Sequence record: OZ196593.1
Reading direction: 5' to 3' (one strand)
DNA: 64,000 nucleotides
In this document: positions 788-50,968 of the stretch, one piece after another
How the letters are laid out: each line of letters begins with the position of its first letter
Position numbering within the stretch: the stretch's first letter is position 1
Program-made: the position numbers and the translations under genes
Notes under the pieces: model-generated
Seen by the model: the letters and a program-made list of their open reading frames with translations, nothing else
The model's database searches: none
Told to the model about the DNA's origin: nothing

Positions 788-2754
788 TGCACACTCTCAA
801 CCCTGACTTTATTAAACGTGCGATTCAACAAGGCGAAGTGTTCAAACGCGTCGCTGAGATAATCGGTCAAGCGCGTCACGATCACTCGCAACTGCAAAAC
901 TGTGTGATACTTGATACACGCGTTGTCGTTGTGCTGTTCGTTGCAGGTCATACTAAACGTGAGTTCGTTACGTACGAAGAGATCAGCGACTACATTCACG
1001 AACACGATGTTCAATTCACATAGGCAATATCATGAACGTATCTCAATTACTTGACCAAGCAAGACAACTACAACTCATTGTTAAACGCATCGCGCTTGAT
1101 CGTCACGATGATGATATGCTCGTTGTCTCTACGTGTTGGACTGGCATCTACTACAAAGTAATGATGTGCAAGAAAGGTCGTGGCGCTAAACCATTTACTG
1201 AAATCATTCGCACGAGTGAACTCGAAGAACGTTTAGCTGAAATTAAACGCATCAAAGATGAACCACTATGACATTTGATCCTAAAATGAAATCAGCACGC
1301 ATCATGCAAGAGTATGAACAACTCAAAGATGCTGTGACTCAATGCATTGACTTGCGTGATGATGAGTCTGTAACTCACGTTGAATACTGTAGACAAAGCA
1401 ATGTGTTCACTGCTGTTGTCGCTACTGATATGTGGCTCGACAATATACAAGTCGATGGCATTACTGTTGAAACTAAATTGAGAGAAATCGATGAACGCAC
1501 ACGAAACAGTTAAACATTACCAACGCATCAAGCGAACAATCGTTACCATCATCGATGAGAACTTCAAAGGCAACTTCACTATCATGGATGCTTTCTATGA
1601 TGATGAACACAAGCATTGGGAAGTTAGCGTCTACGATAATGGCAAAACAGTTGAATACTTCATTACTTCTCATGAACTCGACTGCCGATTCGAATTCGAA
1701 GACATGAAACTGTCTGTTCCATTACCTGATGTGCTGTGCATGAACGACGACGTGCTCGATGAACTGAAGAAAAAACTATGGACGTAAAAGAAACTGTTCA
1801 ACGACACGCGTTCATCTTTAAGAAACTCGATGAACTGCTTGAACTAAACTCGTGTCAATACACTGACCTTGTAGTATGGGATGATGAACGCGAACTGTTC
1901 GAAGTGTGCATCGTCACTGAATCAGAGAATGGCACTGAATATGATGACGTTGAAGTAACGCTCATCACAATACAAAACTATATCGATAAGGAACTATCAT
2001 GAATAGCATGAGACTAGCACTACCAACTTACCTGCAACATCTAACTGTTGTTGAGAACTCTATCACTGTTGATTCTGCACGCGATAAAGCATTGCTTGTT
2101 GAATGGCTGAAGTCAGCGAAAGCTAAGTTCACTATTGAACAAACAACTATCTCTCGCGCTGTGTATCACGTTAAACGTATCGAGGTATAGCATGAGCCAT
2201 ACGATGAAAGCAATGCTGCACACGCTTGAACAAACTGAAATGGCTATTGCACAAGAGTTTGATCTCGATGAACTGTGGCACGGACTGATTGACTGCACTA
2301 ACGATAACTTTGTGTTCTCTATCTGTACCGATGACGTGAAAGATGTCGAACAAGTGCTTGAACAAATACGTGAAGTGAACTACCAGTTCGATACCATTGA
2401 TGACCTCAATGATGGCGATTGCTATGCCATTGAAGTATACGGCACTAGCGTATGGTTGAGCAAAGACAAACAGTATTGCTTAATCGTTGGCTCTCAAAAC
2501 AATCTCGACATGAACTTCTATCTGTTTGATATGAAGAACAATCGCAACAACGAATGGACTGACGAGTAATGCCGTACGCAATCATCTTGACTAATACTAA
2601 TGGCGAAACATGCGAAATCAAACCATTGGTTAACAACTCACTCAAATCTGAATATGGTCTTGAGTGCCGTAAGATTCAACAAAACGCTGCTCTACTCGCT
2701 AAACGAATAGAGAAATTCGACGACGTTGAATCATGTGTCGTTAAACACTATTAA
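787..2754 (+). other. Array of small hypothetical early CDS: 787-1023, 1032-1271, 1268-1513, 1491-1787, 1778-2002, 1999-2190, 2192-2569, 2569-2754
   Basis: Abutting or overlapping (ATGA-type) co-directional ORFs; no recognisable domains. Confidence 0.75.
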
Positions 2755-2779
2755 CTGAAGCGCAATCACAATAAAGTGG

Positions 2780-2808
2780 TTGCGCTTTTTTTTTGCAATC
2801 AGTATAAT
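2780..2808 (+). promoter_or_regulatory. sigma70-type early promoter
   Basis: TTGCGC-17 bp-TATAAT; leader ends GGAGAACATTATG (ATG 2846); TCACA half-site ends 9 bp upstream of the -35. Confidence 0.8.
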
Positions 2809-2845
2809 GAACACAAGAAACAAAAGAATCAAATCGGAGAACATT

Positions 2846-3886: not shown

Positions 3887-4471
3887 ACAACGCAACTGTA
3901 CTCTAACAACACGCTCGTTCAATACAGAAGCTCTCAGAAGCTCTCAGAGCGTGTTACAGACGATATCAGATGTAATGCTTTTTCATATGACGCACCATGC
4001 CTCGTTATTATCAGCAAATGGTATGACGTGAGAGAATATCACTATGATGTGGGTATGAACGTGTGTCATAAGTGTTTGAATAATATCGCGTCGTACAGAA
4101 ATATGCAGTATAATGAGCTGCGAATTGTGTGTTGGTTAGATGATTGAGATAGAGTGACGAAAATTGGTGAAGTCTCACGCGGACACGTGTAGTCGAGAAC
4201 AGCCAAGAATGGTACACAATTTCGAAAAGGCTAAGCCATCCGCAGATGATTGACAGAAAAGATTTGACACGCTGCGGTTGGTTGTGTTAGCGTAGTCCAG
4301 TCCAATAACATAGAGAGAATGACAGATGATTACATTAAGTGTGTTTTACATAGCGCGAGACATGCCATATGGTGAGCGTCCCGAAGAGTTATATTGGGGT
4401 ACGGTGTTGATAGACGTATTGATGTTTCCAACCGCGTACTTTTTACTTGAATTATTGATGAGAACATAGAA
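3887..4471. other. 585-bp gene-free region with repeats and a GC-skew switch; candidate replication origin or control region
   Basis: No credible ORF; inverted repeat AACACGCTC (3908-3916)/GAGCGTGTT (3947-3955) encloses CAGAAGCTCT x2; top strand is C>G before about 4000 and G>C after. Confidence 0.4.
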
Positions 4472-6680: not shown

Positions 6681-9600
6681 ATGACATTACACGAGCTATT
6701 TCAGATTTCAGAAGACCATCCGTATTACTGTGCGACTTCGAACTTTTACAGTAACGACGCGACTGGTCATCACGCCACCATGACTGACTTCTTAGATGAG
6801 TTTGAAGACGCCGACGTTGACATGAATTACGTGTTTCGTTGGGACATTGATTTTCACGATGGTTCTTATTCTGCTGAAGTGCATATGATTGCGCAGCGTA
6901 AAGGTATTTTCATGCCGCAGATCATTGAACGTATTGAAGAGCACGAAGTCGAGCGATTCTTAGATTACTTGAAACGCCACAAAGACGTTGGCGACTTACT
7001 ATGGAGCGGCATCTAATGCAGATCATCAAAACAGAAGAAACTAAAGAGCGCAAGAAAGTATCGGCTTATACTGGTCAAGTCGCCGAGCTGATTACACGTG
7101 ACTCGCGCATCTACGGTACATTGCACTCAATCGAAGGCACTAATCGATTCGTTCTAATCACCGTAGATGGTACTGAAGTACACCCAATTCAACTAGGGCT
7201 TAATATCACGCCATCGTATCAACTATTCGATGAGCAAGGTAACGCGTTTGATTATCACAACGGTCGCCTTATCACGCTTGGTGAAGAAACGACTGTAACG
7301 ACGACCAAGCAAGTTGATATTGTCGTTGGTGATAAGATTACAATGGCGAAGAAGCGTTCAGACCAAGAAGTCGTTGGTACTGTTGTTGCTGTAGACGCCA
7401 TGCATCTAGTCATTGCTGATGGTACAGATTGGTACTTGTTCAATTGCGGCAATGCGAGAGCACAAGCCAATCTTGAGAGCGAATGCAGCTTTATGTACAT
7501 CCCTGGCAAATTGACGGCTAATACATGAGCTGGTGGGCATTGCCTCTAGCATACTTCGTGATTGCTGCTTTGTATTACTTGTTCTGTGTAACACACGACT
7601 ACGTGCTTTACATATGGAAAGGTGTACTTGACAATAAAGCACCAATCACCAGTCTTACTACGCATAAAATTTATGCATTGGTGAGTTTATTATGGCTCCC
7701 AATGCTGATATTCTTAACGTACTGTCATTTCAACAACAAGAGAAAAACATGAAAGACTATAATCAAGTTCTATTGAACGTGAACTACACTAGCGGCACTC
7801 GTGTTGCATTCTGGGTTCATAGCTTTACGTACGAACGTTCTATGAGCCAATCGAACATTACGTGGGATTCTAGCGGGTTTACGCCAGTCACTAATGACGC
7901 TGTAACTCGTGAAGATTTATCACTTGCGGGCATCATTTATGCAGTACGCCCGTTGAAACTAGCGATGGACTTTGATACAATCGAATCAGTGTTCGTTCTT
8001 TCTGAATACGAAGGCGAAGATGGAGATAAACCAGATGACGCTGAATAAAATCTACGAAGGCGTTCTAATCGTCTTCGGCTTAATCGGGGCTGTAATACTG
8101 GCTATTGTCGGCATTGTATGGAGCATTATCGAGTTCTGCATTGGCATTGCGCTAATGATCTTGACTGCGATGTTCGGTGCTCTATGTGCTCTAGTCGGTA
8201 TTGTCATTGCTTGCGTCATTTACCCATTCGCTAAGATTGGTGAATATTTTGGAACTGATAAATCTAATTCCGACAAGTAAGCGTATATGGCCAGTTCTAG
8301 ACATGTGTCGTTGTGACACGTGTCTTACTGAAATGCATACGTCGAAAGCGATAGACGATCATGGTCATCATGACGGGTGGGAAATGCCCCCTTATACGAT
8401 GTACATGTGTCCGTTATGCACTGACGGTTATATGGAAGATTTCTGGCCAAGTCATGAGTCTTACATGAACTGGCGTACTGAAACAGAGCTATCGCCAGAA
8501 GAATTCAAACGACTTTACTATGGAGATTGGCAATGCGAGACGTAACATATATCGTACGACCAGTATTATTCGGGTTATTCTGGAAAGTGGTTTTACACGC
8601 GAACAGCTATGACCGACGCACAATGAGCTTTCATTTATCGCATTATGCAGCTTCAAGCGCAGCCGTAACGTATAGGAATAGCTAATGACCGACAAAATGC
8701 AGCTAGTGTTATCTCAAATTCGCAATGGTGATATGACGGTTATTATGCATATCAATGCTGCGGGTGATAAGTGCTTTACTTCATTGCTCGACAATACGCC
8801 AACCTTGTATTTGACATTGACTTGTCGCGCTTTACTGAAAGCGGGCTTAATACAACCAACACAGACTGAATACGGTCTGATGATGAAATAGGAACTCATA
8901 TGCAAATCGGAGACAAGGTGATTGTTGTAGCAGCACCTGCTAGTAACTATCATATCATCAATGGCGAAGAAGTAACGATCATCAATATGTTCATGTACAA
9001 AGACAAAGCGGTCTTTACTTTCATTCATAAAGACATCGGCTATGGCGCGATGCAAGCTCACGGATTCAAGGTGAAATAATGTTCTATCGATTCTGGGAAA
9101 CAGACGACGGCGATATGCTAGTTGAAATGCTCGACGACTTGTGCGACGAGGTTGGTACTAAAGCGTATATGACAGACATGAACGAAGTCTACCGTACTGA
9201 GAGCGGTCGCCATATGCTATTGCAACATGTTCACAATTGGGGTACAGTCGATTTCCAAGATTGGGATATTCGTACTTTACGCGGTCTTGGCAGCTCTATT
9301 GAAATGCCGAGTTTAACGCTGTCTCCAAGCGACAAAAGCGTGCTTGAACGTACGGTGAAGAAAGAAGGGCTTGACTATGCTATGCTGCACTACAGCAAGT
9401 ATGACGGTGACGTTGGTTTCAACAAAGTCGATTCCAACGAGTTTCACGGTCTGAGAAACGCCTTTGTCGATGCTCGTCAACAACTACAATCGTGGTTAGC
9501 ACTGAACGGGATCACTGAATGAACGTAGAAACAATTGACAGAGAGCTATCGATCATACGCAAGCGCATATTTGCACTACGTAATGCCGAGCGCGTTCTCT

Positions 9601-13209: not shown

Positions 13210-13228
13210 CGTGACTTGAGTCACACAA
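13207..13228. promoter_or_regulatory. CRP-box-like palindrome
   Basis: CGTGA-CTTGAG-TCACA (9/10 core match to TGTGA-N6-TCACA). Confidence 0.5.
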
Positions 13229-13252
13229 AAGCCCCTTAATTGGGGTTTTTTT
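13227..13252 (+). terminator. Intrinsic terminator
   Basis: AAAAGCCCC-TTAATT-GGGGTTTTTTT. Confidence 0.85.
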
Positions 13253-13957: not shown

Positions 13958-16433
13958 TGAACAAGCTAATAAGAGCCATTCTGTGGCTCTTCATTCAAGC
14001 GCGATGGGCTTACTTTCATATCAGTCCATCGTATAAGAAGTTCTACATGATTGCAGACGAAGCGCACTTTCAGCATTTAAAGCGCGGTACGATTCACTCT
14101 AACTTATCGCTGAGGGATGCTAATGACGTTTCTAGTTAGAATGCACGAGCAGCAAATGCAAGAAGCTCTAGCAGTGTTAGGCGCACATTTAGAAGAGTGC
14201 GGTTTAACAGACAAAGCGAGTAATCACAGAGCGAAGCTAATGGGCTGTGAAGTTGACGAGTGGCGTTGGAATGATCTAGAAGACAGCACATCGCCAGTAT
14301 ACGAAGCACTGATCGTCGTACAAGGTTACGATTGGATGATTGGTGCAGATTTGAACTTGAAAAGCAAACATGAAATTCGGAGAACGAAATGACTTATCTA
14401 GAAAAATTACAAGCACTGCGCGATGAACTAGAATCACACTTAGATATCGGTACGTCGCTAGATTATATCCGTTCATCATACGGTTTATGTACGTTCTTCA
14501 ACGCTGAGTTTAAATATGATTTGAAAGAGTGGTGGGTGATCGAGCTTGAGAAAGTTGAGCGTGTTAATCCGAATTACGCAACTGTAATGCGCTCACACGA
14601 GTCAGACGGGTTCTACATCTATGATCGCACGTTCACTGCTACGCCATGCCAGATGTACGGTGATGAGCTATACGAGGGCGTTCAAGGTAACATGCGTCTT
14701 GAAGTATTGAACTTTATTCTGGAGAAGTACAATGGCTGATATGATTGGTGTTGCTATTTACTTGTTTGGTCTTGTTGCTATCGCGCTTTACATCGTTATT
14801 ACTGAAGTGCGCGACAACAAAGACAAGAAAACGCGTGATGATTTCGGTTCACATGTTTTTGTAATCTCGATTGCATGGCCAGTTGTGGGTATGTTGTTAC
14901 TGTGTGGTGGTTTAGCTGAACTAACAGATCGCGGTTTCACTGCATTAATAGAAAAGCTAAAGGGGCGTTAGATGCGAAAGTTCACTATCTCAAGAGCGCG
15001 TGTTGTCTATGATCGCACGATAATCGAAACTGCCGAAGACTTGCTAGAGAACATCACAGACGTTCGACGTTACAATGATGAGCTTGATTTGTATTACTCA
15101 GACGGTCGTCCGGGTATGTTGTCGAAGCTCACTGATATTAAATGTGACGATGTTGGCTTTGATGGTAAAACATTCGAAGACGCGTTGGCTCATTTCAAAG
15201 CCAACCACGAAAAATACTGGGAGGCTCTATGCAACCAATATTCGTAGGCGATAGACTGCCAGAAGTTAGCGGTGAATATTTCTGCATACGTTTTGGTATG
15301 TCTTATGCGCCAGAGCCGATTGACTTTCACGCGCCTGATGAAGACGACGAAGACGATTACCCGCGATGGGGTGATACGATACCGCATTACGGTGGTGGCG
15401 GTGTTGTGCCGTACAAAGAGTTGTCAAATCGTGAGAAATACTTTCGAGATAACTACGGTCGCGTGATGTATTGGTTCGAAAAGCCAGAAGCTACGTTGTC
15501 ACATTCGCAATTTGTTGAGTTCATGCTTGATGAAATGCGCGAGAAGAACATTGACCCCGACGAAGTAACGGGAGTTGCAGACTACAGGAAACACGAATGG
15601 AAACTTTAACTACATATCGTTGTGAGTATTGCGGTGAGATTTCGCCAGAGCAAAAAGTTATTGCTATTTGTGAAGATCGCTGTGCCAGACACAAAACATT
15701 TTTAGACGTTAAGCGTCTTGGTGATATTCAAGCAGAGGCTTACTTGGACAGCATTCGTTTACGTGCTTGCAGCATTCCGCACTTGTTCAAGATCATTCTA
15801 GACGAAGAAGACTTGATCATGGCAGCGGTAGCGCGTTTGCATTTCGTAGATAAACGTCCGCCACCACGCATGTACAATTTCAGTTATGAGCACGTACACT
15901 TCACGAACGCGTATCAGCCGTTCAAAGAAGATCGTATGACGCACAGCTCACCGATTGGTAAGCCGCGTTGCCCGCAGTGGCCTAAAGAAGCGACCGTCTC
16001 GGGGTTAGCTGCTGCTGTGCGAATCAACTTCAAACAGAAAGGCAACAAGAAGCGCATTGATATTTACGAAAAGTACATTCAGTATATCCCTGGTATCAAT
16101 ACGGGTACTGGTGGTGGCTGTGAGAGCGTAAATATTTATTTGACTTTGTGGAAAGAAGACTTTCCATTAATGGGGTGATTATGTTGACATTCGACGAACG
16201 ATTGCGTTTACTAGAGCAAGAGCTAGAGAAGAAAACGCCAGATCAAGTGCTTGCTGAGTTGCAGAGTCACGCAGCAATCGGTCCGAACGCTGATGAGTAT
16301 TGCAAAACACTGGTTAAGAGCGATGGTTAAGTTTTTTGCATGTTGGTTATTGATGATTGTTATGTTAGGCATAGCAAGTCGTGGTGCAATGCCGACAATT
16401 GATTTTCCAATTATTTACTCAATTAAGAACTAG
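13957..16433 (+). other. Array of small hypothetical CDS: 13957-14139, 14117-14392, 14389-14739, 14732-14971 (TM), 14972-15247, 15229-15609 (DUF551-like), 15597-16178 (N-terminal CxxC), 16181-16330, 16323-16433 (TM)
   Basis: Coupled ORFs; 15229 has RLPEVSGEYFC...VMYWFEKPE, a DUF551-like pattern. Confidence 0.7.
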
Positions 16434-16442
16434 ATCACATTT
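16421..16442. promoter_or_regulatory. CRP-box-like site
   Basis: AATTAAGAACTAGATCACATTT, 18/22 to the CRP consensus AAATGTGATCTAGATCACATTT. Confidence 0.6.
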
Positions 16443-18028: not shown

Positions 18029-19624
18029 TTAAACTATCACTAGCTATCGCGTCTGAATTTACAGACAAAACAGACCGCGTGCTGCCAACTGACATCGTTA
18101 CACGCGTAAACGAGCGCGTATCAAAGTTCGGTTGGAATTATTACACTGCTGAGTCGAAGTGGTTAGACACTGCTGATCGCGATGTTGTGTTCGATTTCAT
18201 CGCTGAAGAACTCGGCTTTCAAGATGGTTGGCCACTGTTCGGCTCGTCAATGGAATACACTCAGTCGTTTTTCAACAAACTATCAGAACTGGAGAAAGCA
18301 GATGCTTAAACGAATCAAAGCATGGCTCAAGAAATTCGAGCCTACACCAATTGAAATCGGTCAGCAATACGCTCACGTTGACAATACATGGCAACTCAAG
18401 ACAGAGAAAGTGAGCATTATTGAAATCACTAACGTATCTGTTGATGGTAAAGATGCGTTGTACTCTCATATTCGAGTTGCCGGCATGACACCTGCATACA
18501 TTGAACCGTCATCGCCGTTCCCACGTGAAGATTACAAAACAACTGCTGCGTATCTTCGAAGCAAACACATGCGTCTGTTGACTGAAGACGAGCGAATCGA
18601 CCACGGGTACTTCTAATGAAAAATGCTATTAGAACGTTGTGGCGTGATATGAAAGTGTTCATTGTCATGCTTATCATGTGCGTGTCACTCATCGTCGGGT
18701 CGATGCTCGATCACAATAGAGTGTTTGAGTCTGATCCGCACGTTGGCGAACATTGGGTATCGTATCAAGAGCCTGAGTTTCACGATGAAGAACGATTAGT
18801 AACTCGCGTGAAAGTCGATGCAATCTCGCTTGATGGTGATAAGGTACGTTACCGCTATGAAATGATCGATAACGAAACATCACACGCCCCTGATATGACG
18901 TTCGAAACGAACAAGAAATGGTTCAAACAAATCTACGACAAGGAATAAATGATGGCTTTAGCACACGACCCACGAGAAGAAGAAAACGAAAACCTAAGAG
19001 CGTCGTCACATATGCTCCCTCATAAGCGTCGTGTGCCGTCACCACCAAAGGCACCGAAAGAGCCTGACATCCCTGAAATCAAAACAGTCAAGATCAAAGA
19101 AAAGACGTGGTGGGATTACTTGAAGACCACTATGGTATTCGCGATGATTATAATGTTCTTCTGTGCATTGGTTGAGATTGTAGATCGCCCAGATATTGGT
19201 GACATTTACTACACATCGACGAGCACAGGGTGGGAATCTGAAGAAGATACACGCGTTTACATTGAAATCGTTGACGTGAACGACGATAAAGGTCTAGTTC
19301 GCTATAAGTTTTTAGACAATCGTCGCCCTGAAGTGAAAGAAATGCAATACTACGTGCTACACAATCTTTTTGAAGAATCATATTTTGGAGTTATTGGAAA
19401 TGAAAGCAACCGACAAACAAATATATCTGTGCAACTTGCTCATTGATAATGGCGCGCCATTTGAGCTGAAGCACCCGCACGAGAACAGCATCGAAGCTGC
19501 TGACGCGTTCATAAAAGAGAATCGTCACTATCTACAGCGCGGTCTTGTCAAGCATGAGAACTATTACCAAGCGATGACTGAAGGCGGAATGACGCCCGAA
19601 GACTTCGGTGTGCTGAATATGTGA
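18025..19624 (+). other. CDS 18025-18309, 18302-18616, 18616-18948 (TM), 18949-19446 (Pro-rich, TM), 19400-19624
   Basis: Coupled ORFs; three share the P-x-(I/V)-G-x-x-(W/Y) beta motif. Confidence 0.7.
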
Positions 19625-19638
19625 TGTAGATCACTAGA
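19617..19638. promoter_or_regulatory. CRP-box-like site
   Basis: ATATGTGATGTAGATCACTAGA: TGTGA-N6-TCACT, ending 9 bp upstream of the -35. Confidence 0.6.
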
Positions 19639-35671: not shown

Positions 35672-36450
35672 AAAAACTAACATGTGACGTTATGCTGAGA
35701 CGCGGCGTTGATCTACACGATGGCGATACAATCGCGAACGTTGACGATGATGATTGGTCGGTAGCGTTCTGGGGTCAATGTTGCCAGACGATTATATCTG
35801 GTCAGAACGTATGCCCTGCTTGGGTTATTCGAAACTTCGCTTGGCGTGATTACTCGATGAACAAGCCGACTGAGGGTAGCAACTATCCAGTTGAATACAG
35901 AGTCGCAGGCGGTGGTATTGGTTTCACGACCTCTAATCATCTTGCTCAAACTAAACTAATTAAAGAATGGAGACCTTGCATGAAATCGTTGCAAGTCGAT
36001 ACCGTAACACCGAAGAGCGTTGAAGCCCTTCTCGAAGAACTTGGTGAAATGCCGTCAACGACTGCTGAACAAGTTGTCGATGAATCACTTCCTGCTAACG
36101 GAACGCAGTCGCTGCACGAAGAAAACGGCATGACAGATGCAGAACTAGACGAAGCACTCGACGTAATCACTGAGTTCGCGACTGAACCAGACGACATTCC
36201 GCGTCTTGATATGTCTAAAGTTCCTACTGTGATTTACATGGGCAAGCCTCACGCGATTATCGGTGATGACCCGTTTGACTTTGAATACATGTACCTCATC
36301 GGTGATAATCAAATCGCGGTGCGTGTTCCCAAGACTCAAGTCGCGACACAAACCGAGTTCGACGAAGCAGCGCGATTCGAGCTTGAACACAAACAGATGT
36401 GGACAACTCAAGACTACGTTCACTTGATTCGTTCTGTTCGCGAAGTGTGA
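35668..36450 (+). CDS. Hypothetical protein with acidic linker
   Basis: 260-aa ORF coupled to the lipoprotein gene. Confidence 0.7.
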   Translation: MKKLTCDVMLRRGVDLHDGDTIANVDDDDWSVAFWGQCCQTIISGQNVCPAWVIRNFAWRDYSMNKPTEGSNYPVEYRVAGGGIGFTTSNHLAQTKLIKEWRPCMKSLQVDTVTPKSVEALLEELGEMPSTTAEQVVDESLPANGTQSLHEENGMTDAELDEALDVITEFATEPDDIPRLDMSKVPTVIYMGKPHAIIGDDPFDFEYMYLIGDNQIAVRVPKTQVATQTEFDEAARFELEHKQMWTTQDYVHLIRSVREV

Positions 36451-36464
36451 TGAAAATCACATAT
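36443..36464. promoter_or_regulatory. CRP box (perfect core)
   Basis: AAGTGTGATGAAAATCACATAT: TGTGA-N6-TCACA centred about -60.5 from the estimated start of the promoter at 36479. Confidence 0.7.
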
Positions 36465-36472: not shown

Positions 36473-36507
36473 CAGGGGTTGCATTGCAGCCCCTTTAACT
36501 GTAAGAT
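36473..36507 (+). promoter_or_regulatory. Hairpin-embedded sigma70 promoter
   Basis: AGGGGTTGC-ATT-GCAGCCCCTTT holds TTGCAT (36479)-17-TAAGAT. Confidence 0.75.
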
Positions 36508-37968: not shown

Positions 37969-37978
37969 CACGATATTG

Positions 37979-38001
37979 AAAGCTCCTTCGGGAGCTTTTT
38001 T
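37979..38001 (+). terminator. UUCG intrinsic terminator
   Basis: AAAGCTCC-TTCG-GGAGCTTTTTT. Confidence 0.9.
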
Positions 38002-38003
38002 CG

Positions 38004-38032
38004 TTTATAGTGTCGTATAAACATAGTACAAT
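38004..38032 (+). promoter_or_regulatory. Promoter region of the radical-SAM operon (late-like and/or sigma70-like)
   Basis: TATAAACA at 38016-38023 (7/8 to T4 late TATAAATA); also TTTATA-17-TACAAT. Confidence 0.45.
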
Positions 38033-38047
38033 GATGATGAGGTGAAT

Positions 38048-42450: not shown

Positions 42451-42451
42451 A

Positions 42452-43537
42452 ATGAAGAAAATTGGGATTATGATTGACGGCTATTTTGTGTCGTCTGGTT
42501 CTGGCATTAATACGTACGTACGTCACTTGTGTCAGACGCTGATTAAAGATCTTGGTTATGATGTGACGCTGTTCGTCGATACTCCGATTGAAGAGAAAGT
42601 GAGTCTCAATCAATACAACAAAATCGGTGTGAATATCGTGAACGCAAACGAGAACTATCGCGTGCGTACGTTCACTGCGTCATTCGAAGAGAATCACGTA
42701 GCTAGAGTATTCAAAGACATTTGTCAACCGTGGGTCGATGAGCATAAGCCAGTCGCGATGATTTCTCATAGCTACGGAACTGCTCTTGCTGTGCGCGACT
42801 TAGAGTTCGATGGTAAGAAATGCATCGTCACTCATATCGGTGATGTAATGGCGCCTGACTTACCCGACTTGTGGGACTTTGAAGATCATACAGTGCGCAG
42901 CTTCTTGCAATCGCTTGACAATAACGACATTGATTTGGTGTGTCAGACAGAAGGGATTGTGGACAATCATCTTAAAGTGCTGAAGAATCGCGACCGAAAG
43001 AGTTGTATTGTGTGTCATGAACCATTTCACGTTGCGATTGACCGACAGCTTAGACCTGTTCGTGAGGGAGCGATTGTAGTGGCGGGTAATTACAAGCGTA
43101 AGCGACTGCACGACGTGATCGATGTGTGCGCTAAAGCTGACATACCCTTGACGATAATCACGGGCGATAAGACGGGTTACGGCGAAGATTTAGACATGTA
43201 TTGCATCAAGCAAAAGGTTCGATACAACATCATCGAGAAACTAGCGAACGATTTCGTTGTTCCTCAGATTAGAAGTCATCGAATCATGATTCACTTGAGC
43301 GACATTGAAGTGTGTCCGTACAGTGTAATCGAAGCGATGCCGTACGTGCATTGTTTAGTGAAGAAAGGCGCGCCGTGGACTCACAAGTTTTACCCTGAAT
43401 ACACGACGCGAATCGATTTAGATGACATAGACATCGTAAAAGATGCCTATGAGAATTACGACAAGTACGAGACAATGGATCTCGCTGAGTATCAGAAGTC
43501 AGTTAACGACTCATGGGAAGCTTACTTGAGTTCGTGA
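42452..43537 (+). CDS. GT-B fold glycosyltransferase (GT4-like)
   Basis: N-terminal GSGINTY..L...L...GYDVT; C-terminal E-X7-E (IEVCPYSVIEA). Confidence 0.75.
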   Translation: MKKIGIMIDGYFVSSGSGINTYVRHLCQTLIKDLGYDVTLFVDTPIEEKVSLNQYNKIGVNIVNANENYRVRTFTASFEENHVARVFKDICQPWVDEHKPVAMISHSYGTALAVRDLEFDGKKCIVTHIGDVMAPDLPDLWDFEDHTVRSFLQSLDNNDIDLVCQTEGIVDNHLKVLKNRDRKSCIVCHEPFHVAIDRQLRPVREGAIVVAGNYKRKRLHDVIDVCAKADIPLTIITGDKTGYGEDLDMYCIKQKVRYNIIEKLANDFVVPQIRSHRIMIHLSDIEVCPYSVIEAMPYVHCLVKKGAPWTHKFYPEYTTRIDLDDIDIVKDAYENYDKYETMDLAEYQKSVNDSWEAYLSS

Positions 43538-44784
43538 AGTTCATCTTGAAGTTTGAAAAGGGCGATTAGATTATCGTCCTTTTCTTTTAAGTGCGTTGAG
43601 TAATCGCCTGTCCAAAACTCACAAGCTGAAACCGCAGCTTGATACACAAAGTTTTCCAATTCACCGTAGCGTTCTGCATACGGTTCCAACTCATCAATGA
43701 GTATTTTCAAACGTCGTACCGTGTCATCTAGAACTTCTGGTGCGAGATCTTCGACAATCAGCTCTGGTCTACCCGTCACATATTCAAATGAACAGCAATT
43801 CACACCCATATCTTTATACTCAGTCAATATTTCGCGTAGAAACTCTGGCATATGCGGGTATGTGATGCGTGTAACGCACGCTGCGATGTTGTAACACACT
43901 TCAGGGTTGTAAGCTATGTATTCACGCAAATTCTTCTTCACGTGCTCTGTGTTCGTTCCTAGACGCTGGTAGTCATTTATCTCTGCAATCGAATCGATGC
44001 TGAAATTCACGACATGTAAGTTGGGTTGGTCAAGCATTGTTCGAATACGGTCATTCAGCTTGATCGTACCATTCGTCACGACACCAATTTCACTTGTGCT
44101 TTCAACGATGAAATCAATCGTCTTGTTATTCATCAATGGCTCACCGCCAACTACCGATGTGATCGTGTGACTGTCAGTGTATTTGTGAATCGTAGATGGG
44201 TTGATTTCTTTCTCAAGTGGCACGAAACATGCTTCGACGGAATTCAATTTCTCGCTTTGTTTACGAGCAGTCGGATGTTTGTCGTATTTCTTGCGAATCT
44301 TATTTGATGCATATGAATTACACATGCGGCATTCGAGGTTACAATTACTGCCGAAACTGATTACATTGTTTTTCAGTTTGACGTTTGTATTGTCGTAATC
44401 CCATGAACCATCTTCGCCAGTCTCAACGAAAATATCTTCAGCATCTTGACCGCGCAATAAACGCAATCGACTTCGATGTTCTTTTGACACTTCATCACAG
44501 AAAACAGTTTTACCCCGAGTTTCGATACACTGAGCGCACACTTTATTCATCGGCTGTTCGCCAATCATTTGCAAGCGTAGATTTTTCATCGCTTTTGTGT
44601 TCATATCTTTGTTGAGTTCGAAAGGCGTGTCGTCGTAGACATACTCAGGGTCGAGTTCTTTCATGTGAGCTGACAGCCAACAACAAGGGGCGATTTCATT
44701 GTTCGCCCCAATTTGCAGACCAGCCCAGGGATAGTGACACGGAACCGTATCAGGAATTTGTGGCGTGGCGTATGTGTTCTGCAT
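43522..44784 (-). CDS. Radical SAM protein 4 (same architecture)
   Basis: CHYPW..APCC..CAQC; CNLECRMC; GGEPL; TNGT; FSIDS. Confidence 0.92.
   Translation of the reverse strand: MQNTYATPQIPDTVPCHYPWAGLQIGANNEIAPCCWLSAHMKELDPEYVYDDTPFELNKDMNTKAMKNLRLQMIGEQPMNKVCAQCIETRGKTVFCDEVSKEHRSRLRLLRGQDAEDIFVETGEDGSWDYDNTNVKLKNNVISFGSNCNLECRMCNSYASNKIRKKYDKHPTARKQSEKLNSVEACFVPLEKEINPSTIHKYTDSHTITSVVGGEPLMNNKTIDFIVESTSEIGVVTNGTIKLNDRIRTMLDQPNLHVVNFSIDSIAEINDYQRLGTNTEHVKKNLREYIAYNPEVCYNIAACVTRITYPHMPEFLREILTEYKDMGVNCCSFEYVTGRPELIVEDLAPEVLDDTVRRLKILIDELEPYAERYGELENFVYQAAVSACEFWTGDYSTHLKEKDDNLIALFKLQDELHELK
43556..43588 (+). terminator. Terminator of the plus-strand operon, inside the 3' end of the convergent gene
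   Basis: AAAAGGGCGAT...ATCGTCCTTTTCTTTT. Confidence 0.6.
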
Positions 44785-45763
44785 ATTTTTTATCTCTCAT
44801 TTCAATAATATTTTCAAGTAACTCTAGGTGCTCTGCATTGCACATTTGACCTAGCAGTCTTTCATCGTCTTTGAGATATTTAATAAGCAAAGAAAAGTCG
44901 GCACAGAATATACCCTGTCCCAATCGATGTAGAGGTACACCAATCTGCATTTCTTTTTTCACACGCTCGAATTGATAGTGGAAGTATTTTTGTTCATACA
45001 GATACTGAACGATTCGACGGTCTTCTGTGTGATGACGTGTCAATTCGCGAATGAAATCTTCTTCAGTTTCCATATGGTTTAGATGTGTCCACGTACGTAT
45101 GTTGTACGCGTTACTGATCACTTTGAAATTGCCATTGATCATGATGTTCAAGAACTCTTGATCACAATATCGTTGATAGTACAAGTCGCACCACATTCTG
45201 AAATCTGGTAGATTCAGCTTGCGCCATTCTGCACAGTCAGCAACAACAAGCCCTGCATTGAACGTCATCGGTACTGATTTAAGTAGCGCGATGAACTTTT
45301 CGCTTGCATCGGGGTGATCTAGATTGCGCCAGTAGTCATAATGACCGTCCATGCCGAAATCTTTATGCCAATCCATGTTACTTGCCATCGGTTTACCCTC
45401 AAGATCGCAAGTCACTAACTCGTCAAGATTGCCACACGCAACCATATCTAAGTCGAAGTAGATGGCGCGTTCATATTTCCCCTCACGAGCTGCGTGCTCT
45501 AATGAGTCAGGACAAAGACTGAACGCAGGTAAAGCAAACGCTTGATCCCCGTCTAATCCCTCAAGATCATGTTTCGGTAGTTCGATGATCTCGACTGGGA
45601 ATTCATCTATAACACATGGTACAGTTTCAGCATCATTCGTGTACCAACGATAATCAACGTCTTCAGTAATATTGTCATGAATTGAGCGAAGTACGATATT
45701 ACCCCACTTCGCATAGTCAATGTTTTGGTTACTGGTAGCGACGTACACTACGCATTTAGCCAA
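44750..45763 (-). CDS. Glycosyltransferase family 8-like (GT-A); TTG start after GGAG RBS
   Basis: YFDLDMV (DxD), FNAGLVVAD, DQEFLN, AYN motifs. Confidence 0.85.
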   Translation of the reverse strand: MAKCVVYVATSNQNIDYAKWGNIVLRSIHDNITEDVDYRWYTNDAETVPCVIDEFPVEIIELPKHDLEGLDGDQAFALPAFSLCPDSLEHAAREGKYERAIYFDLDMVACGNLDELVTCDLEGKPMASNMDWHKDFGMDGHYDYWRNLDHPDASEKFIALLKSVPMTFNAGLVVADCAEWRKLNLPDFRMWCDLYYQRYCDQEFLNIMINGNFKVISNAYNIRTWTHLNHMETEEDFIRELTRHHTEDRRIVQYLYEQKYFHYQFERVKKEMQIGVPLHRLGQGIFCADFSLLIKYLKDDERLLGQMCNAEHLELLENIIEMRDKKYAEHIRHATNS

Positions 45764-46835
45764 TGTATTTCTCCCAAGGTGAAGCATCCCACGAAGAGCG
45801 TACTTCTTTTTCAGAAACAGAGAACGTGTCAACGGTCTCAATCAAAACGCCAAGAACTTCAACGGGATCGCTGTAATCTGAAATGTCGATTACTGAATCT
45901 TTGTCAAGGTCGATGTCAGCGCCTTTCAAAATGTATTTGTACGAGTCGATGACGTTTTCAGATACCGATTCGATGTTGTGCAAGTTGTAGTCGATAACCA
46001 TTGCAGCTTCACACAAGTCTTTCACTTCAGATGAATCAATAGTCGTGATGATATCGATTTTGAAACCAAGCGGTGCGACCGACTGTAGAATCGAATCAAG
46101 CTCGTCTTTCTGATTACACACAATGCCCAATGAGTTCGTGTTGATGACGCTTACAAGGTCATACAGCTCGATAAATTCACGATTTACGATATCATTCAGC
46201 TCTGGACGAACGTTGTCGATGTACAGTTGAGAATGGGGAATCGACCAAGTGATATTTTCAAGGTCATTTGTACACTTGCCGCTGAAGCTCAAGCACTTCT
46301 TATCAGTCCCGCCAAGCTTATTGATCATGTGATCTGCTTGCTCAGAGAATGACACGAATGTTTGAATGCTACCAAAGTCAGCCGTTTCGTCAGTCAACCC
46401 GTCGAAAATAAATGCTGTTTTGTACTTTGATGATAGATGACGCACAAGCGTATCTTCGCGCAGCGGTGCAAGTAAGATAATCTTTTTGAAGTTCAGACGA
46501 TTCAACGAGTTTACCGAAAGCTGTAGTCGTGAAATATCGCGCACAGCGTCTTCGTAGTTCATCGTATCATCAACCATAATCGCGATTGTCGAACCGTCGA
46601 TATCAACATTGGTATCTTCTTCACGAATTCGAAGCAATCCCCATTCGAATTCAATCTGTTCTTTCGTAACTTCGATGATGTTGTCAAAGCTGTCTTTCAG
46701 TGTTGCGCACTTAGCGTCAGCGTCACACTCAAGCACTTCATACGTGCGGTCATCGGGGTCAAGTGAAGACACGACATAAAGCATTTTCTCTTGAAAATAC
46801 TTCGGATTGTCGCGCAGTTCTTTAATCGTTATCAT
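45756..46835 (-). CDS. Acidic hypothetical protein, possibly a degenerate Rossmann/GT-A-like fold
   Basis: 359 aa; alpha/beta pattern TIAIMV...LSVNSL..KKIILL; coupled to both neighbours. Confidence 0.6.
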   Translation of the reverse strand: MITIKELRDNPKYFQEKMLYVVSSLDPDDRTYEVLECDADAKCATLKDSFDNIIEVTKEQIEFEWGLLRIREEDTNVDIDGSTIAIMVDDTMNYEDAVRDISRLQLSVNSLNRLNFKKIILLAPLREDTLVRHLSSKYKTAFIFDGLTDETADFGSIQTFVSFSEQADHMINKLGGTDKKCLSFSGKCTNDLENITWSIPHSQLYIDNVRPELNDIVNREFIELYDLVSVINTNSLGIVCNQKDELDSILQSVAPLGFKIDIITTIDSSEVKDLCEAAMVIDYNLHNIESVSENVIDSYKYILKGADIDLDKDSVIDISDYSDPVEVLGVLIETVDTFSVSEKEVRSSWDASPWEKYIG

Positions 46836-47509
46836 GTTTTAATCCTATTTTTGAACACAAGTGACATGTAAGAGTATGAACCCGAAATGCCGCCTGTCTG
46901 ACTGCCATAACTATTTGATACTGTGCCTAACGACGCGCCACTTTTGTAACCTGCTAGAGACGTGCTTGTTGTATTGAACACAGCGTAACCAGAGTTTGCG
47001 TGATAAATGTAGTAGTACACTCTATATAGTGTCGCAGTACCGTACCATGCACCCCATGATGGGTAACGACCACTATCCATTAGACCTTTAACAGCAGCTA
47101 AGTTTGTGCTTCCGTCTTTCACGTAAGCCCACGTGTTGTAGCCGCCACTCGCCCCTGATACTGTAATTGAACGACTTGTGTTGTTATTGATCCATGAACC
47201 AACTGGTGCATAGTAGAACGTACCGTCGATGTTATCGTAACGTTTCGTCGTGAACTGAAAACGTACTTGAATCGCGTCCATCCAAAGACCGTGATTGTCG
47301 CTCGTAGCTGAACCGGCTAGGTTGTACATTGACACTGCGCCATTGTCTGGCATTAGTGTATCGCCGTTCGTACCCCAGTATGTGTAACGCGGCAATTGAT
47401 TGGCAGTTGAAACCGACTGAGTTGACGTGTGTACTTGACGGTAGTTGCTCAATGCAGTTCCGTAGTTCTTACACCAAGCGTCACGAATCGCTGTAATTGA
47501 AACACTCAT
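46832..47509 (-). CDS. Late Gly/Ser/Thr/Tyr-rich protein; putative tail-fibre adhesin or virion appendage
   Basis: Composition; P..GAVSMYNLAGS resembles the N-terminal attachment motif of gp38-like adhesins; perfect late promoter upstream. Confidence 0.55.
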   Translation of the reverse strand: MSVSITAIRDAWCKNYGTALSNYRQVHTSTQSVSTANQLPRYTYWGTNGDTLMPDNGAVSMYNLAGSATSDNHGLWMDAIQVRFQFTTKRYDNIDGTFYYAPVGSWINNNTSRSITVSGASGGYNTWAYVKDGSTNLAAVKGLMDSGRYPSWGAWYGTATLYRVYYYIYHANSGYAVFNTTSTSLAGYKSGASLGTVSNSYGSQTGGISGSYSYMSLVFKNRIKT

Positions 47510-47554
47510 TATTAATGTCCTCAGTGTTTAAAATTGAAATAAGTAGCTATACAA

Positions 47555-47562
47555 TATTTATA
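47555..47562 (-). promoter_or_regulatory. T4-type late promoter
   Basis: TATTTATA on plus = TATAAATA on minus, 45 nt upstream of the 47509 start. Confidence 0.75.
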
Positions 47563-47584
47563 GTTAACACATAGCGAGAAAATC

Positions 47585-48055
47585 ATGAGAAATTATAGCG
47601 ATCTACTGTTCAACGTACTGACGAATGGTCGTCCAGTATCAAATACTGAAATTCAATTGCAAGGCGTTACGTTTGAACACAGCGCGCCACACGCCCCAAT
47701 CACGTGCATGTTCGATCATGAGATCAAGTTCGAAGAAGATGAAACTCACGTAATCGATATGATTGACGAGTTGACCTATGTCAAGCAAGTCGGTGTTGTG
47801 TCGCCTTTACAGATGTATATTGAGACTGTTCACGGCTACTTAAATACACTGTATCGCTCACAAAAGACTGGACAGCCAGTCGGTCGCATCGTCATTCAAG
47901 CTGAAGCAGTTGAAGTTAAGCGCGAAGACATGGACGCGTATTTGAATATCATCGGTAAAGAAATGGTGTTCGGGCCGCGTCTTGAAGGGTCGCCAGTAAC
48001 GGCAGAATTCGTTGACGGTGAGCTGAAATTAAACAACTTCAATATCATTGGGTAA
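47585..48055 (+). CDS. Truncated or degenerate thymidylate-synthase-fold protein
   Basis: YSDLLFNVLTNG resembles the TS N-terminus; QKTGQPVGRIVI and GPRL...NFNIIG resemble the TS C-terminus; catalytic PCH absent. Confidence 0.45.
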   Translation: MRNYSDLLFNVLTNGRPVSNTEIQLQGVTFEHSAPHAPITCMFDHEIKFEEDETHVIDMIDELTYVKQVGVVSPLQMYIETVHGYLNTLYRSQKTGQPVGRIVIQAEAVEVKREDMDAYLNIIGKEMVFGPRLEGSPVTAEFVDGELKLNNFNIIG

Positions 48056-48060
48056 AATAA

Positions 48061-48510
48061 ATGAAAAAACTTCTTGCAATTGCTGCAACAGCACTGCTAT
48101 TATCAGCTCCAGTTCAAGCAGATGACATTTCGCTTCACATCGGGTCATATACACATGCGTGGGATGACGACCGAATGAACGAACAGTCATTTAACATCGG
48201 TGGTCGTTATGAAGACTTCGCGTTCGGTTACATTGATCGCAACGTCTTTGACAATCACAGTGTTTATGCTTATTGGAACCCTCGCGTTTACAAGTCAGAA
48301 CATTTCGACTTCGGCTTTGCACTTGGTGCACAGACGGGTTGGGAAGATGACGCTTGCTACGACGGCTGGGGTTATGAAGACAAATTTACAATCGGTGATC
48401 ATATTGCACCGCTAGTTGGTCTGACAGCAGAAGCTAAAGTCGGTGACGTTGGCATTGAAACTGTCATCACGCCTATGCTAGTGCGTACAAACTTTGTGAT
48501 TCACTTCTAA
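48061..48510 (+). CDS. Secreted small outer-membrane beta-barrel, PagP-like
   Basis: Signal peptide (VQA/DD), alternating beta strands, H..D..R.NE...GG and FDFGFALG motifs, C-terminal Phe. Confidence 0.55.
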   Translation: MKKLLAIAATALLLSAPVQADDISLHIGSYTHAWDDDRMNEQSFNIGGRYEDFAFGYIDRNVFDNHSVYAYWNPRVYKSEHFDFGFALGAQTGWEDDACYDGWGYEDKFTIGDHIAPLVGLTAEAKVGDVGIETVITPMLVRTNFVIHF

Positions 48511-48520
48511 GGGTGAATAA

Positions 48521-49327
48521 ATGGAGCTAACAGAATCGATTACAGTTCATGGTCGAGCGTTGCACACTGAGAAAGCGGTTGGGGTGATTTTACACCCCGC
48601 TGAACACGGCATATCATTTACGATTAAAGGGGCTACTTTTCATAGCTCGTCGCGCTCAACCGTTTCGAAAGAACTATGTTCGATGATGATGTTTGATATC
48701 AAACGTCATGTTCTGACGTACGAACATCTTTTAGCTGCACTGAATCAGTTGCACATCCCGAACATTCGCATTGAATTGCTTGATGGTGCAACTGAACTGC
48801 CAATTCTTGACGGTTCCGCTCAGGGTTGGGTTGATTTGTTGAAGTACAACATCAAGTCGATGGGGCAGACTAAATTTAATCAGATTAAATTAATCAAGCC
48901 TGTTACTGTGCGCGATGGCGATGCGTATATCATTGCGCTACCGTCACGTGAGCCGGTTTACTCGTACGAGCAAAACTTCGATCTTCACGCGACTCAAAGC
49001 ATGACGAGAATGAAAATGTTCAACTTGTCTCGCGGTGATTGGTTTGATATCATGGCTGAACCGACGATTACCGTCGAAGGCATGGGCAACGAGCACAAAT
49101 ACAACACTGGTTTTTCGAATTACATCTCCGACGAAAGCACGTCGTGCCATCGCGACTCGCTTGTAAATCACAAGTTACTAGACTTGATCGGTGATACGTA
49201 CGCAAACGGTATGCGCTTAATCGCAGACATCGAAGCGTACAAAACGGGTCATTCGCATAACAACATGTTGATGCGAAAGATATTGAGTGATGAGACGAAT
49301 TACATCATCGTTCAAAAAGAAGTTTAA
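48521..49327 (+). CDS. lpxC: LpxC-family Zn-dependent deacetylase
   Basis: G..LHT.K, TYEHLLAAL, ELPILDGSA, NHKLLDLIGD, AYKTGH..N: all catalytic and Zn motifs present. Confidence 0.9.
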   Translation: MELTESITVHGRALHTEKAVGVILHPAEHGISFTIKGATFHSSSRSTVSKELCSMMMFDIKRHVLTYEHLLAALNQLHIPNIRIELLDGATELPILDGSAQGWVDLLKYNIKSMGQTKFNQIKLIKPVTVRDGDAYIIALPSREPVYSYEQNFDLHATQSMTRMKMFNLSRGDWFDIMAEPTITVEGMGNEHKYNTGFSNYISDESTSCHRDSLVNHKLLDLIGDTYANGMRLIADIEAYKTGHSHNNMLMRKILSDETNYIIVQKEV

Positions 49328-49387
49328 CAGCAACAAAAACTGACTCATAATAGAGTCTCAATCAATCGCATATTTGGGGAGTCCATC

Positions 49388-50947
49388 ATGCAAAAATTAA
49401 ATAAAGTAACACAAGCAATCGGTCAAATTCAAAACATCGGAACAGGCACTAACTTCATTGGTGCGTCAACTAACATCGTAACGGCAGTTGACAGTTATAA
49501 AGTCTCACACTGGTCACAATTCCCACGCGGTCTTGAGATCAGCCAATATTACGTCGAAAGCCGAGGCGGCAAGTTCGACAAGATTATGGTCGATGGTATT
49601 GCACGTATGTGTCGTATTCTCGAAAAGGGTGTTTCGAAAGGTGATGTAGCGTATGCGAAGCGATTGTTCAAGAAGCACTTTGGTTCTGAAGTGTTCAATG
49701 ACAAGGGGTTTGATATCATCGTCAACGAACTGAACGGCAAACTGCCAATCAAGATTCGTGCGGTGAAAGAGGGCATCGTCGTGCCGACAAAACACCCAAT
49801 CTTGACAGTTGAGAACACAGATTCACGTTTCGGCTGGTTACCTGGCTATCTTGAAACGTTCGTCTTGCGTGCTATCTGGTACCCGACTACAGTAGCGACT
49901 ATTTCGTTTGAAGTTAAGAAAATCATCCGCCAGTACATGAAGAAGACTGTAGATGATGAGCTTATCCCTCAACTCGAACCGTTTAAGCTTCACGACTTTG
50001 GAGCACGTGGTGTCTCTAGTGCAGAATCAGCAGCGATTGGCGGCTCTTCTCACTTGAAAAACTTTTTAGGCACTGACACGGTAGAAGCACTGGTTGACGT
50101 TGAAGAGCTTTACGGCGATGATTTAGAAGATTTCATCGCGGGATTCTCTATCCCTGCACGTGAGCACTCAACAACAACAATCTACAAGAAAATGGGCGAA
50201 GACCTAGCGTTCTTGAACTCGATTGACCAATGGGGTGGCGGTCTATACGCTTGTGTAATGGATTCATACGATTACGAAGCAGCTATGGAACGTGTATCAA
50301 CTGGTCGATTCAAAGAACTGATCATCAGTAAAGGCGGAACGTTCATCGCTCGTCCTGACTCTGGTGTGCCAGTAGATGTAGTCATGAAAGGTCTAGAAAT
50401 TCTCGGTAAGAACGTTGGCTACACAGTCAATAGCAAGGGCTACAAAGTGTTACACCCTAGCTACCGCATCATTCAAGGTGACGGTGTGAATATCGAAGAG
50501 ATTCGCAGAATCTTAGACTTCATGGAAGCTAAGGGCTGGTCTGCGGAAAACATTGCATTCGGCATGGGTGGTGGTTTGCTTCAGCAATCTGACCGTGATA
50601 CTCAACGTTTCGCAATGAAAATGTCAGCAGCAATCATCAACGGTGAATACGTTTCTGTGTTCAAGATGCCAAAGACTGACCCAAGCAAAGCTTCTAAAGC
50701 GGGATTCTTGGATCTTATCGCGGTAAAACCAGACGAGCCAAACCCAGCCGCACGCGGTTATGTTACTGTCTCGACTGAGAGCTATGAATCACGCGTACAC
50801 CCGAACAGTGTTATGGTGACTGTGTTTGAAGATGGTGAAACAGTTTACGACTTCTCACTTGCAGAGGCGCGCCACTTCTCTGACGAACAAGCGAACTTTC
50901 TTAACGAAGGCGAGTGGAAAATCAATAAAAAGCCATTAACGGCTTAA
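49388..50947 (+). CDS. nadV: Nicotinamide phosphoribosyltransferase
   Basis: DSYKVSH, LHDFGARG, GTDT, EHS, DSYD, RPDSG, IQGDG, FGMGGGLLQ, KTDPSKASKAG. Confidence 0.96.
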   Translation: MQKLNKVTQAIGQIQNIGTGTNFIGASTNIVTAVDSYKVSHWSQFPRGLEISQYYVESRGGKFDKIMVDGIARMCRILEKGVSKGDVAYAKRLFKKHFGSEVFNDKGFDIIVNELNGKLPIKIRAVKEGIVVPTKHPILTVENTDSRFGWLPGYLETFVLRAIWYPTTVATISFEVKKIIRQYMKKTVDDELIPQLEPFKLHDFGARGVSSAESAAIGGSSHLKNFLGTDTVEALVDVEELYGDDLEDFIAGFSIPAREHSTTTIYKKMGEDLAFLNSIDQWGGGLYACVMDSYDYEAAMERVSTGRFKELIISKGGTFIARPDSGVPVDVVMKGLEILGKNVGYTVNSKGYKVLHPSYRIIQGDGVNIEEIRRILDFMEAKGWSAENIAFGMGGGLLQQSDRDTQRFAMKMSAAIINGEYVSVFKMPKTDPSKASKAGFLDLIAVKPDEPNPAARGYVTVSTESYESRVHPNSVMVTVFEDGETVYDFSLAEARHFSDEQANFLNEGEWKINKKPLTA

Positions 50948-50968
50948 AATGTGACGTAGATCACACAA
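50947..50968. promoter_or_regulatory. CRP box (perfect core)
   Basis: AAATGTGACGTAGATCACACAA, 17/22 to consensus; centred about -62.5 from the estimated start of the promoter at 50985. Confidence 0.75.

Follow-up and report, generated by a model that had tools for sequence, protein, structure and literature searches.

CRP-like palindromes precede a subset of early promoter cassettes in a lytic KVP40-like Vibrio phage

Introduction

T4-type phages are usually portrayed as transcribing their early genes strongly and constitutively with the host sigma70 polymerase, independently of host regulators. Could some early promoters of such a phage respond to the host's cAMP receptor protein (CRP)? The question is raised by a 64,000-nucleotide stretch of sequence record OZ196593.1 (the window, meaning the whole stretch that was analyzed), in which six sites resembling the CRP consensus TGTGA-N6-TCACA lie at gene junctions upstream of promoters. 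A sequence-only reading had taken all six as CRP boxes at phased positions, through which a lytic T4-like phage would tune accessory genes to host carbon status. The window is approximately 99.6% identical to Vibrio phage K566 (255 kb, a KVP40-like lytic Schizotequatrovirus) and aligns as a whole to K566 at ~124,019-187,500 with 97-100% identity and few indels, while Vibrio phages K566 and K567 both match window 36000-40000 at 100% (megablast). K566 and K567 are 255-kb phages from seawater and oysters, and their group comprises KVP40-like, T4-related, strictly lytic Schizotequatroviruses infecting Vibrio crassostreae (PMC12028318), which bears out the assignment to a lytic T4-like phage.

Our analysis indicated that the host-CRP interpretation is plausible and partly supported. 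The best explanation, which we hold with even confidence for and against, would be that a few early members of a promoter-terminator cassette family known from nt-1 and KVP40, the PeSLs (PMC4122927), carry a near-consensus host CRP site giving class I activation. From the earlier proposal of host-CRP tuning, the core match, the promoter enrichment, two predicted class I centers, two conserved junctions, and the accessory nature of the genes downstream were retained, whereas a trio of sites lying 9 bp ahead of the -35 element was not.

Palindromes at the 5' edges of promoter cassettes

The coordinates, 22-mer match counts, and -35 spacings proposed for the six sites were all correct on recomputation. 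The two-fold symmetric motif TGTGA-N6-TCACA is matched at 10/10 positions at 36446 and 50950 and at 9/10 at 19620 and 13210, so that four of the six supposed boxes are real palindromes, whereas 16421 and 2752 lack the symmetry and have the right half only; for 2752-2773, this agrees with its original description as a half-site. The sites and the two promoters that follow the exact palindromes are as follows.

50950..50965, no strand assigned: exact palindrome TGTGA-N6-TCACA (22-mer 50947-50968, 17/22; core 10/10), 2 nt past the stop of nadV (NAMPT)
50981..51013, + strand: PeSL cassette, a GC-rich terminator-like hairpin with a T-run; -35 TTGCTT (50985-50990) inside it, 17-bp spacer, -10 TATTAT (51008-51013)
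36446..36461, no strand assigned: exact palindrome (22-mer 36443-36464, 17/22; core 10/10), the left half holding the TGA stop of gene 35668-36450
36479..36507, + strand: island PeSL promoter, -35 TTGCAT within a hairpin, weak -10 TAAGAT (36502-36507)
19620..19635, no strand assigned: 9/10 palindrome TGTGA-N6-TCACT (22-mer 19617-19638, 16/22), overlapping the TGA stop of the upstream gene
13210..13225, no strand assigned: 9/10 palindrome CGTGA-N6-TCACA (22-mer 13207-13228), directly past a TAG stop and followed by a terminator hairpin at ~13229-13252
16424..16439, no strand assigned: right half-site TTAAG-N6-TCACA (22-mer 16421-16442), 9 bp ahead of the -35 at 16449
2755..2770, no strand assigned: right half-site CTGAA-N6-TCACA (22-mer 2752-2773), 9 bp ahead of the -35 at 2780

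Every site stands at the 5' edge of a PeSL terminator-promoter cassette, and the left halves overlap or adjoin the stop codon of the upstream gene, with the TGA stop lying inside TGTGA at 36446 and 19620. The score of 18/22 at 16421-16442 is owed to the flanks and spacer, the left half being TTAAG, and this half-site is most easily explained as a TAGATCACA cassette edge that was copied and truncated, not as a CRP site. The 19620 site and the 50950 cassette have TAGATCAC in common.

The repeated cassette consists, in order, of an AAAG(G/T)GG context, a -35 element (TTGCTT, TTGCGC, or TTGACN) often set within a GC-rich hairpin that is followed by a T-run, a 17-18 bp spacer, a -10 element TAWWAT, a conserved leader (CTATCGAAACGAAAC), and a ribosome-binding region (GAGAGAACATT-ATG); downstream of 50981, the leader and ribosome-binding site extend to the ATG at 51056. 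The stem-loop, early sigma70-like promoter, Shine-Dalgarno sequence, and start codon of a small gene that mark a PeSL are all present, the hairpins fold at -21.9 to -23 kcal/mol (z-scores, -3.5 to -4.0), and the sigma70-type -35/-10 spacing of 17-18 bp recurs in about 30 cassettes across the genome, compared with 4 hits after the genome was shuffled. These promoters agree with the PeSL consensus TTGYVH-N17-TAWWAT published for nt-1 and KVP40, where PeSLs were described as mediating modular gene shuffling and as recombination hotspots, with a generally AT-rich upstream part and no mention of CRP or palindromes (PMC4122927). Where the cassette hairpin recurs in KVP40, VH7D, and unrelated Vibrio phage contigs (19 IMG/VR loci from a hairpin scan), the upstream sequence is likewise A/T-rich, nadV copies excepted; the box therefore represents a specific addition to the cassette. 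The same hairpin (GGGTTGC stem, TTCG loop, T-run), together with a -10-like TATAAT and the common leader, was also observed in IMG/VR contigs L011, L015, L017, L020, L023, and L026 (111-128 kb), and its occurrence in Vibrio phage contigs unrelated to KVP40 indicates that this cassette type crosses phage families.

Two candidate definitions were discarded. The published TTGYVH-N17-TAWWAT pattern was dropped as a promoter definition because it misses TTGCTT and TTGAC cassettes and catches coding-region noise. The reading of TTGCTT as a MotA box was set aside, since its 17-bp spacer to the -10 fits sigma70 and not the 11-13 bp of T4 middle promoters; KVP40-type phages have AsiA and no recognizable MotA (PMC2988021).

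Enrichment upstream of early promoters

Within the window alone the count was not significant: nine sites deviate from the core at no more than one position where 4.95 would be expected (a total of nine was reached in 6 of 100 shuffles); exact sites numbered two against 0.30 expected (3 of 100 shuffles). Four of the nine lie on gene junctions, which make up approximately 5% of the window. Across the whole K566 genome there are 24 sites with zero or one core mismatch, three of them exact, and six stand just upstream of PeSL promoters, as listed below by K566 coordinate.

K566 63542, outside the window: core 9/10, gap to -35 of 19 bp
K566 114520, outside the window: core 9/10, gap to -35 of 18 bp
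K566 137227, window 13210: core 9/10, gap to -35 of 47 bp
K566 143637, window 19620: core 9/10, gap to -35 of 9 bp
K566 159946, window 36446: core 10/10, gap to -35 of 17 bp
K566 174450, window 50950: core 10/10, gap to -35 of 19 bp

Promoters were defined without regard to their upstream sequence, by a weight matrix that covered the -35 together with the -10-plus-leader; trained on 15 promoters of the window, it returned 30 hits in K566 compared with 4 in a shuffled genome and still missed the sprT promoter. Sites with no more than one core mismatch were found in the upstream regions (100 nt) of five of these 30 hits. The number expected was 0.12 by a Markov-1 null (0 of 20,000 simulations) and 0.24 by the genome-wide site density (Poisson, 5e-6). 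The enrichment over background that had been proposed as a check was thus found upstream of sigma70-type early promoters in the K566 genome. When all 5-mer inverted repeats with gaps of 0-12 were ranked, TGTGA-6-TCACA came first and was the sole top-ranked repeat not composed purely of A/T; the only enriched hexamers that were not A/T-rich were TAGATC and ATCACA. The third exact TGTGA-N6-TCACA of the genome, at K566 43118-43133 outside the window, lies inside the annotated 5' end of a DNA primase gene, just upstream of a good Shine-Dalgarno sequence and ATG, and no PeSL promoter follows it.

Position relative to the predicted start

Transcription starts were predicted at 7 nt past each -10 hexamer, and the gaps between the end of TCACA and the -35 hexamer were 9, 9, 9, 17, 19, and 47 bp across the six window sites. 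CRP is known to activate from -41.5 or -61.5 (PMC6050953), and at class I promoters its AR1 surface contacts the alpha C-terminal domain (PMC10187061). By these predictions, the 36446 box (gap, 17 bp) is centered at -60.5 and the 50950 box (gap, 19 bp) at -62.5, which would give the two best window sites class I geometry with respect to their inferred starts. Counting two further K566 sites outside the window, at about -62.5, four sites with gaps of 17-19 bp are centered at -60.5 to -62.5, and they fall into three seemingly independent families (nadV, sprT, and island) with differing flanks and spacers.

The sites with a 9-bp gap (19620, 16421, and 2752) are centered at -52.5 or -53.5, with 19620 at -52.5 relative to a promoter whose -35 lies at 19645, and the 13210 site, 47 bp from a -35 TTTACA at 13273, is centered at -90.5. 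Busby and Ebright reportedly place further class I CRP positions at about -72, -83, and -93, a list that does not include about -52. The description of the sites as phased was therefore overstated, since there are two groups near -52.5 and -61.5 and one outlier at -90.5, and the class I placement at -61.5 is predicted for 36446, 50950, and the two other K566 sites but not for the 9-bp trio. We claim no function for 19620, 16421, 2752, and 13210, which are probably copies or fragments spread by cassette recombination.

Conservation, loss, and movement among relatives

The nadV junction was aligned in 10 phages (K566, KVP40, PG216, F86, PVA8, phi-pp2, phi-ST2, VH7D, VS2, and QD01). GTGA...GATCAC is invariant in all of them, the site reads (T/C)GTGA-N6-TCAC(A/T/G) with only the outermost bases varying, and the gap of 19 bp never changes. 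A pairwise comparison of K566 with KVP40 shows differences at two of the six spacer positions, and the 19 nt from the box to the -35 agree at only 10 positions. At the alc-sprT junction, the core scores 9/10 in K566 and KVP40, 10/10 in F86, 8/10 in ValKK3, and 7/10 in VS2 and phi-ST2, with a gap of 19 bp wherever the box is present, and the box is absent from 1.081.O. Both junctions thus retain the box between phages that are only ~78% identical.

D482 (97-99% identical) also has the window sites at 13210, 16421, and 19620, and KVP40 lacks all three: the 19620 site shows one spacer change in D482, whereas in KVP40 the stop codon runs straight into the -35 context, and the KVP40 junction orthologous to 13210 has no palindrome. 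The flank of the 2752 site varies in D482. OmpK-dependent relatives such as D482 and 6E35.1a have both the 19620 and the 50950 sites. A unit of the same type as the 13210-13252 palindrome with its GCCCCTTAATTGGGG terminator occurs at a non-orthologous KVP40 junction (L009, ~8985-9042; core 8/10), which suggests that this palindrome-terminator unit represents a second mobile cassette type.

Homology breakpoints coincide with the boxes. D482 homology stops at 36452, exactly at the 36446 box, where D482 has GTGTAA and the window has GTGTGA, so that the change of the stop codon from TAA to TGA at the island junction completed the palindrome. At the sprT junction, the first base of the box is also the first base of homology to KVP40 (query position 293). 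The box with its PeSL at 36452/36453 and the sprT junction accordingly show PeSLs at the edges of insertions, deletions, or replacements.

These breakpoints are what would be expected if the boxes were passengers, that is, if a palindrome at the 5' edge of one ancestral PeSL had been copied by PeSL exchange, its likeness to CRP sites being incidental and without a regulatory role. PeSLs are documented recombination hotspots (PMC4122927), three of the window sites (13210, 16421, and 19620) have no KVP40 counterpart, and TAGATCAC is common to four K566 cassettes (174450, 114520, 143637, and 140448), the last of which corresponds to window 16421 and has been cut to its right half. However, the nadV box has kept both halves and its gap across ~78% identical lineages while nearby noncoding bases diverged, the nadV, sprT, and island families all stand 17-19 bp from the -35 despite differing flanks and spacers, and the TAA-to-TGA change at the island junction completes the palindrome. 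We therefore regard mere passenger status for the boxes as rather unlikely.

Candidate binders

In a qualitative comparison, the full palindromes agreed with the CRP core no less well than the best in vivo-bound Vibrio cholerae CRP sites in a chromatin immunoprecipitation sequencing table (PMC6050953), some of which are nearly indistinguishable from the phage boxes and one of which is close to the degraded VS2 variant. The V. cholerae CRP motif is the same as the E. coli CAP motif (PMC10187061). With E. coli CRP as the query, no CRP/FNR homolog was detected in any open frame of the phage (best tblastn E value, 2.3; best phmmer E value, 0.36). A 17-residue tblastn match (53% identity, E = 7) to the E. 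coli CRP recognition-helix region at window 22080-22130, within a 135-amino-acid hypothetical gene lacking a Pfam hit, is most likely due to chance.

The boxes might instead be the operator of another dimeric DNA-binding protein with a CRP-like core, either a phage early protein or a different host factor. Few of the phage genes around the sites have an assigned function, the presence of AsiA without a recognizable MotA in KVP40-type phages (PMC2988021) leads one to expect novel transcription factors, and the 3' flanks are A-rich, in contrast to the T-rich flank of the CRP consensus. We consider such a factor improbable, however, because the homology searches described above found no CRP/FNR relative in any reading frame, because the matching bases are exactly those that CRP recognizes and variation is greatest at the outermost ones, a pattern shared with genuine CRP sites, and because early promoters fire ahead of any phage protein synthesis.

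The location of the palindromes at or just past stop codons and before terminator-like hairpins also raises the idea of an RNA element, namely, a small 3'-terminal hairpin in the upstream mRNA that would affect transcript stability or termination. The predicted stems fold at -3.6 to -7.7 kcal/mol, and the 36446 stem has a z-score of -4.5, yet these stems have little length or stability, substitutions at the outer positions disrupt base pairing without compensation while the GTGA/TCAC sequence itself is conserved, and there is no Rfam match, all of which make this role very improbable. Taken together, the weak RNA folds, the lack of a CRP homolog, and the likeness to V. cholerae sites make a protein site at the DNA level the best reading, with host CRP as the obvious candidate.

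Several observations weigh against host CRP activation. Because the four cassettes with TAGATCAC are copies of one edge, the enrichment statistics overcount independent events; there are approximately four independent families (nadV-type, sprT, island, and 137227), and four against 0.24 expected corresponds to roughly P = 1e-4. In KVP40, the 160-kb early region holds only two promoter-linked sites, both orthologous to those in K566, so that KVP40 provides no independent confirmation of the enrichment and the larger K566 number reflects a lineage-specific expansion. The group with the 9-bp gap comprises two half-sites and one full site near -52.5, which is no known CRP activating position. The sprT box is degraded to 7-8/10 in VS2, phi-ST2, and ValKK3 and lost in 1.081.O, the entire promoter at that junction is well conserved with the box not standing out, and, having a perfect -35 and a 5/6 -10, this promoter would need little help. 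Moreover, K566 encodes an Alt-like ADP-ribosyltransferase, and T4 Alt and ModA modify alpha Arg265, which is required for UP-element and CRP contacts (PMC2988021). Lastly, 15% of deoxyguanosine (dG) is replaced by dPreQ1 in a close relative (PMC12028318), and in the major groove CRP recognizes G2 and G4 of TGTGA through R180 and R185 (PMC10187061); native phage DNA might therefore bind CRP poorly.

Genomic context

The K566 annotation carried over to the window gives 134 genes, nearly all on the + strand, with ~5% noncoding sequence. Approximately 316 bp at 22295-22611 (open reading frame 22291-22617) have no counterpart in K566, and the next 1.8 kb (22611-24453) is only 97.3% identical, which indicates that the window derives from a very close relative or variant of K566 rather than from the K566 record itself. 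The short annotated genes at 16381-16512 and 50973-51065 (VPHK566_0251 and VPHK566_0316) span the PeSL hairpin, -35, -10, and leader and are probably annotation artifacts masking intergenic regulatory DNA. A 141-bp noncoding gap at 3887-4027 contains CAGAAGCTCT-like units in a short tandem array and lacks a PeSL-type promoter.

The accessory character claimed for the genes downstream of the boxes was supported, as these comprise a swapped-in anti-defense island, a SprT-like protein, and small genes without an assigned function. The island (36453-49362) is specific to K566 and K567, replaces a different block in D482-type relatives, and has been described as a swapped anti-defense island (PMC12028318). 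Its PeSL would drive a 475-amino-acid lipoprotein-like gene (36541-37968), behind which radical-SAM and glycosyltransferase genes extend to 43537; the Pfam content includes three radical-SAM proteins and family 8 and 4-like glycosyltransferases on the + strand. The island also contains four minus-strand genes (43522-47509) and a PagP-like gene, and its edges lie at the CRP-like box on the left and 25 bp ahead of the NAMPT start codon on the right. NAD salvage or reconstitution genes in the window encode an NMN adenylyltransferase (20803-21957), a PnuC-like transporter (23250-23948), and NAMPT (49388-50947), the conserved CRP-like box lying directly downstream of the last (nadV); the NAMPT pathway has been cited as a NARP2 counter-defense (PMC12028318).

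Discussion

The architecture described here resembles, at the level of sequence, a class I CRP promoter grafted onto a PeSL. In the mechanism that we favor, a CRP site would replace the usual A/T-rich upstream stretch in a few early PeSLs, namely those at window 36446 and 50950 and two more in K566 at the alc-sprT and rIIB-downstream junctions. cAMP-CRP bound ~61.5 bp upstream would contact the alpha C-terminal domain and help recruit the host sigma70 polymerase, so that in high-cAMP cells the genes behind the boxes would show stronger expression during the first minutes of infection.

Like class I CRP promoters of the lac P1 type in enterobacteria and vibrios, the phage promoters combine a 16-bp TGTGA-N6-TCACA with a downstream sigma70 promoter whose -35 is non-consensus (TTGCTT, TTGCAT), the inferred box centers are at -60.5 to -62.5, and an A-rich stretch between box and -35 occupies the place where the alpha C-terminal domain would sit. 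Unlike them, the phage sites are located on a lytic genome and fused to a terminator hairpin holding the -35, the phage DNA may hold 7-deazaguanine, and alpha may be ADP-ribosylated by the phage Alt-like enzyme. The cassettes share with T4-type PeSLs (Arbiol 2010, PMC2839356; Comeau 2014, PMC4122927) the stem-loop, sigma70-like promoter, leader, Shine-Dalgarno sequence, and ATG, as well as their repetition between small early genes and at the edges of insertions or replacements, such as at 36453, but a subset here starts with a CRP-type palindrome. In coliphage T1, cAMP-CRP represses the pir, dam, and recE promoters (Laganenka 2019, PMC6737242), an example of host CRP acting directly on promoters of a phage long regarded as lytic and tying expression to carbon state, as is predicted from sequence here. 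In T1, however, CRP represses and feeds a lysis-lysogeny-like switch, whereas the geometry in this T4-like phage, which has no lysogeny, suggests activation of early accessory genes. No earlier report of CRP boxes in T4-type or KVP40-type phages was found in the literature.

A broader and more tentative proposal, which we rate as possible but well short of even confidence, is that cAMP-CRP activates a small, evolving set of early promoters in lytic Schizotequatroviruses, with boxes gained, lost, and moved on PeSLs, and that in K566 and K567 the newly acquired anti-defense island is driven by a perfect box tuned to the state of the LamB-bearing cells that these phages can enter. In E. coli, lamB expression requires CRP. 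K566 and K567 are reported to have switched from OmpK to LamB as their receptor (PMC12028318). By analogy, and speculatively, LamB use may link the cells that K566 and K567 can enter to an active CRP state.

Should the CRP reading fail, a recurrent palindrome marking PeSL recombination edges would remain on record. If it holds, PeSL cassettes would shuffle regulatory inputs and not genes alone, and a virulent phage would sense the carbon state of its host at entry and adjust selected accessory and anti-defense genes in response.

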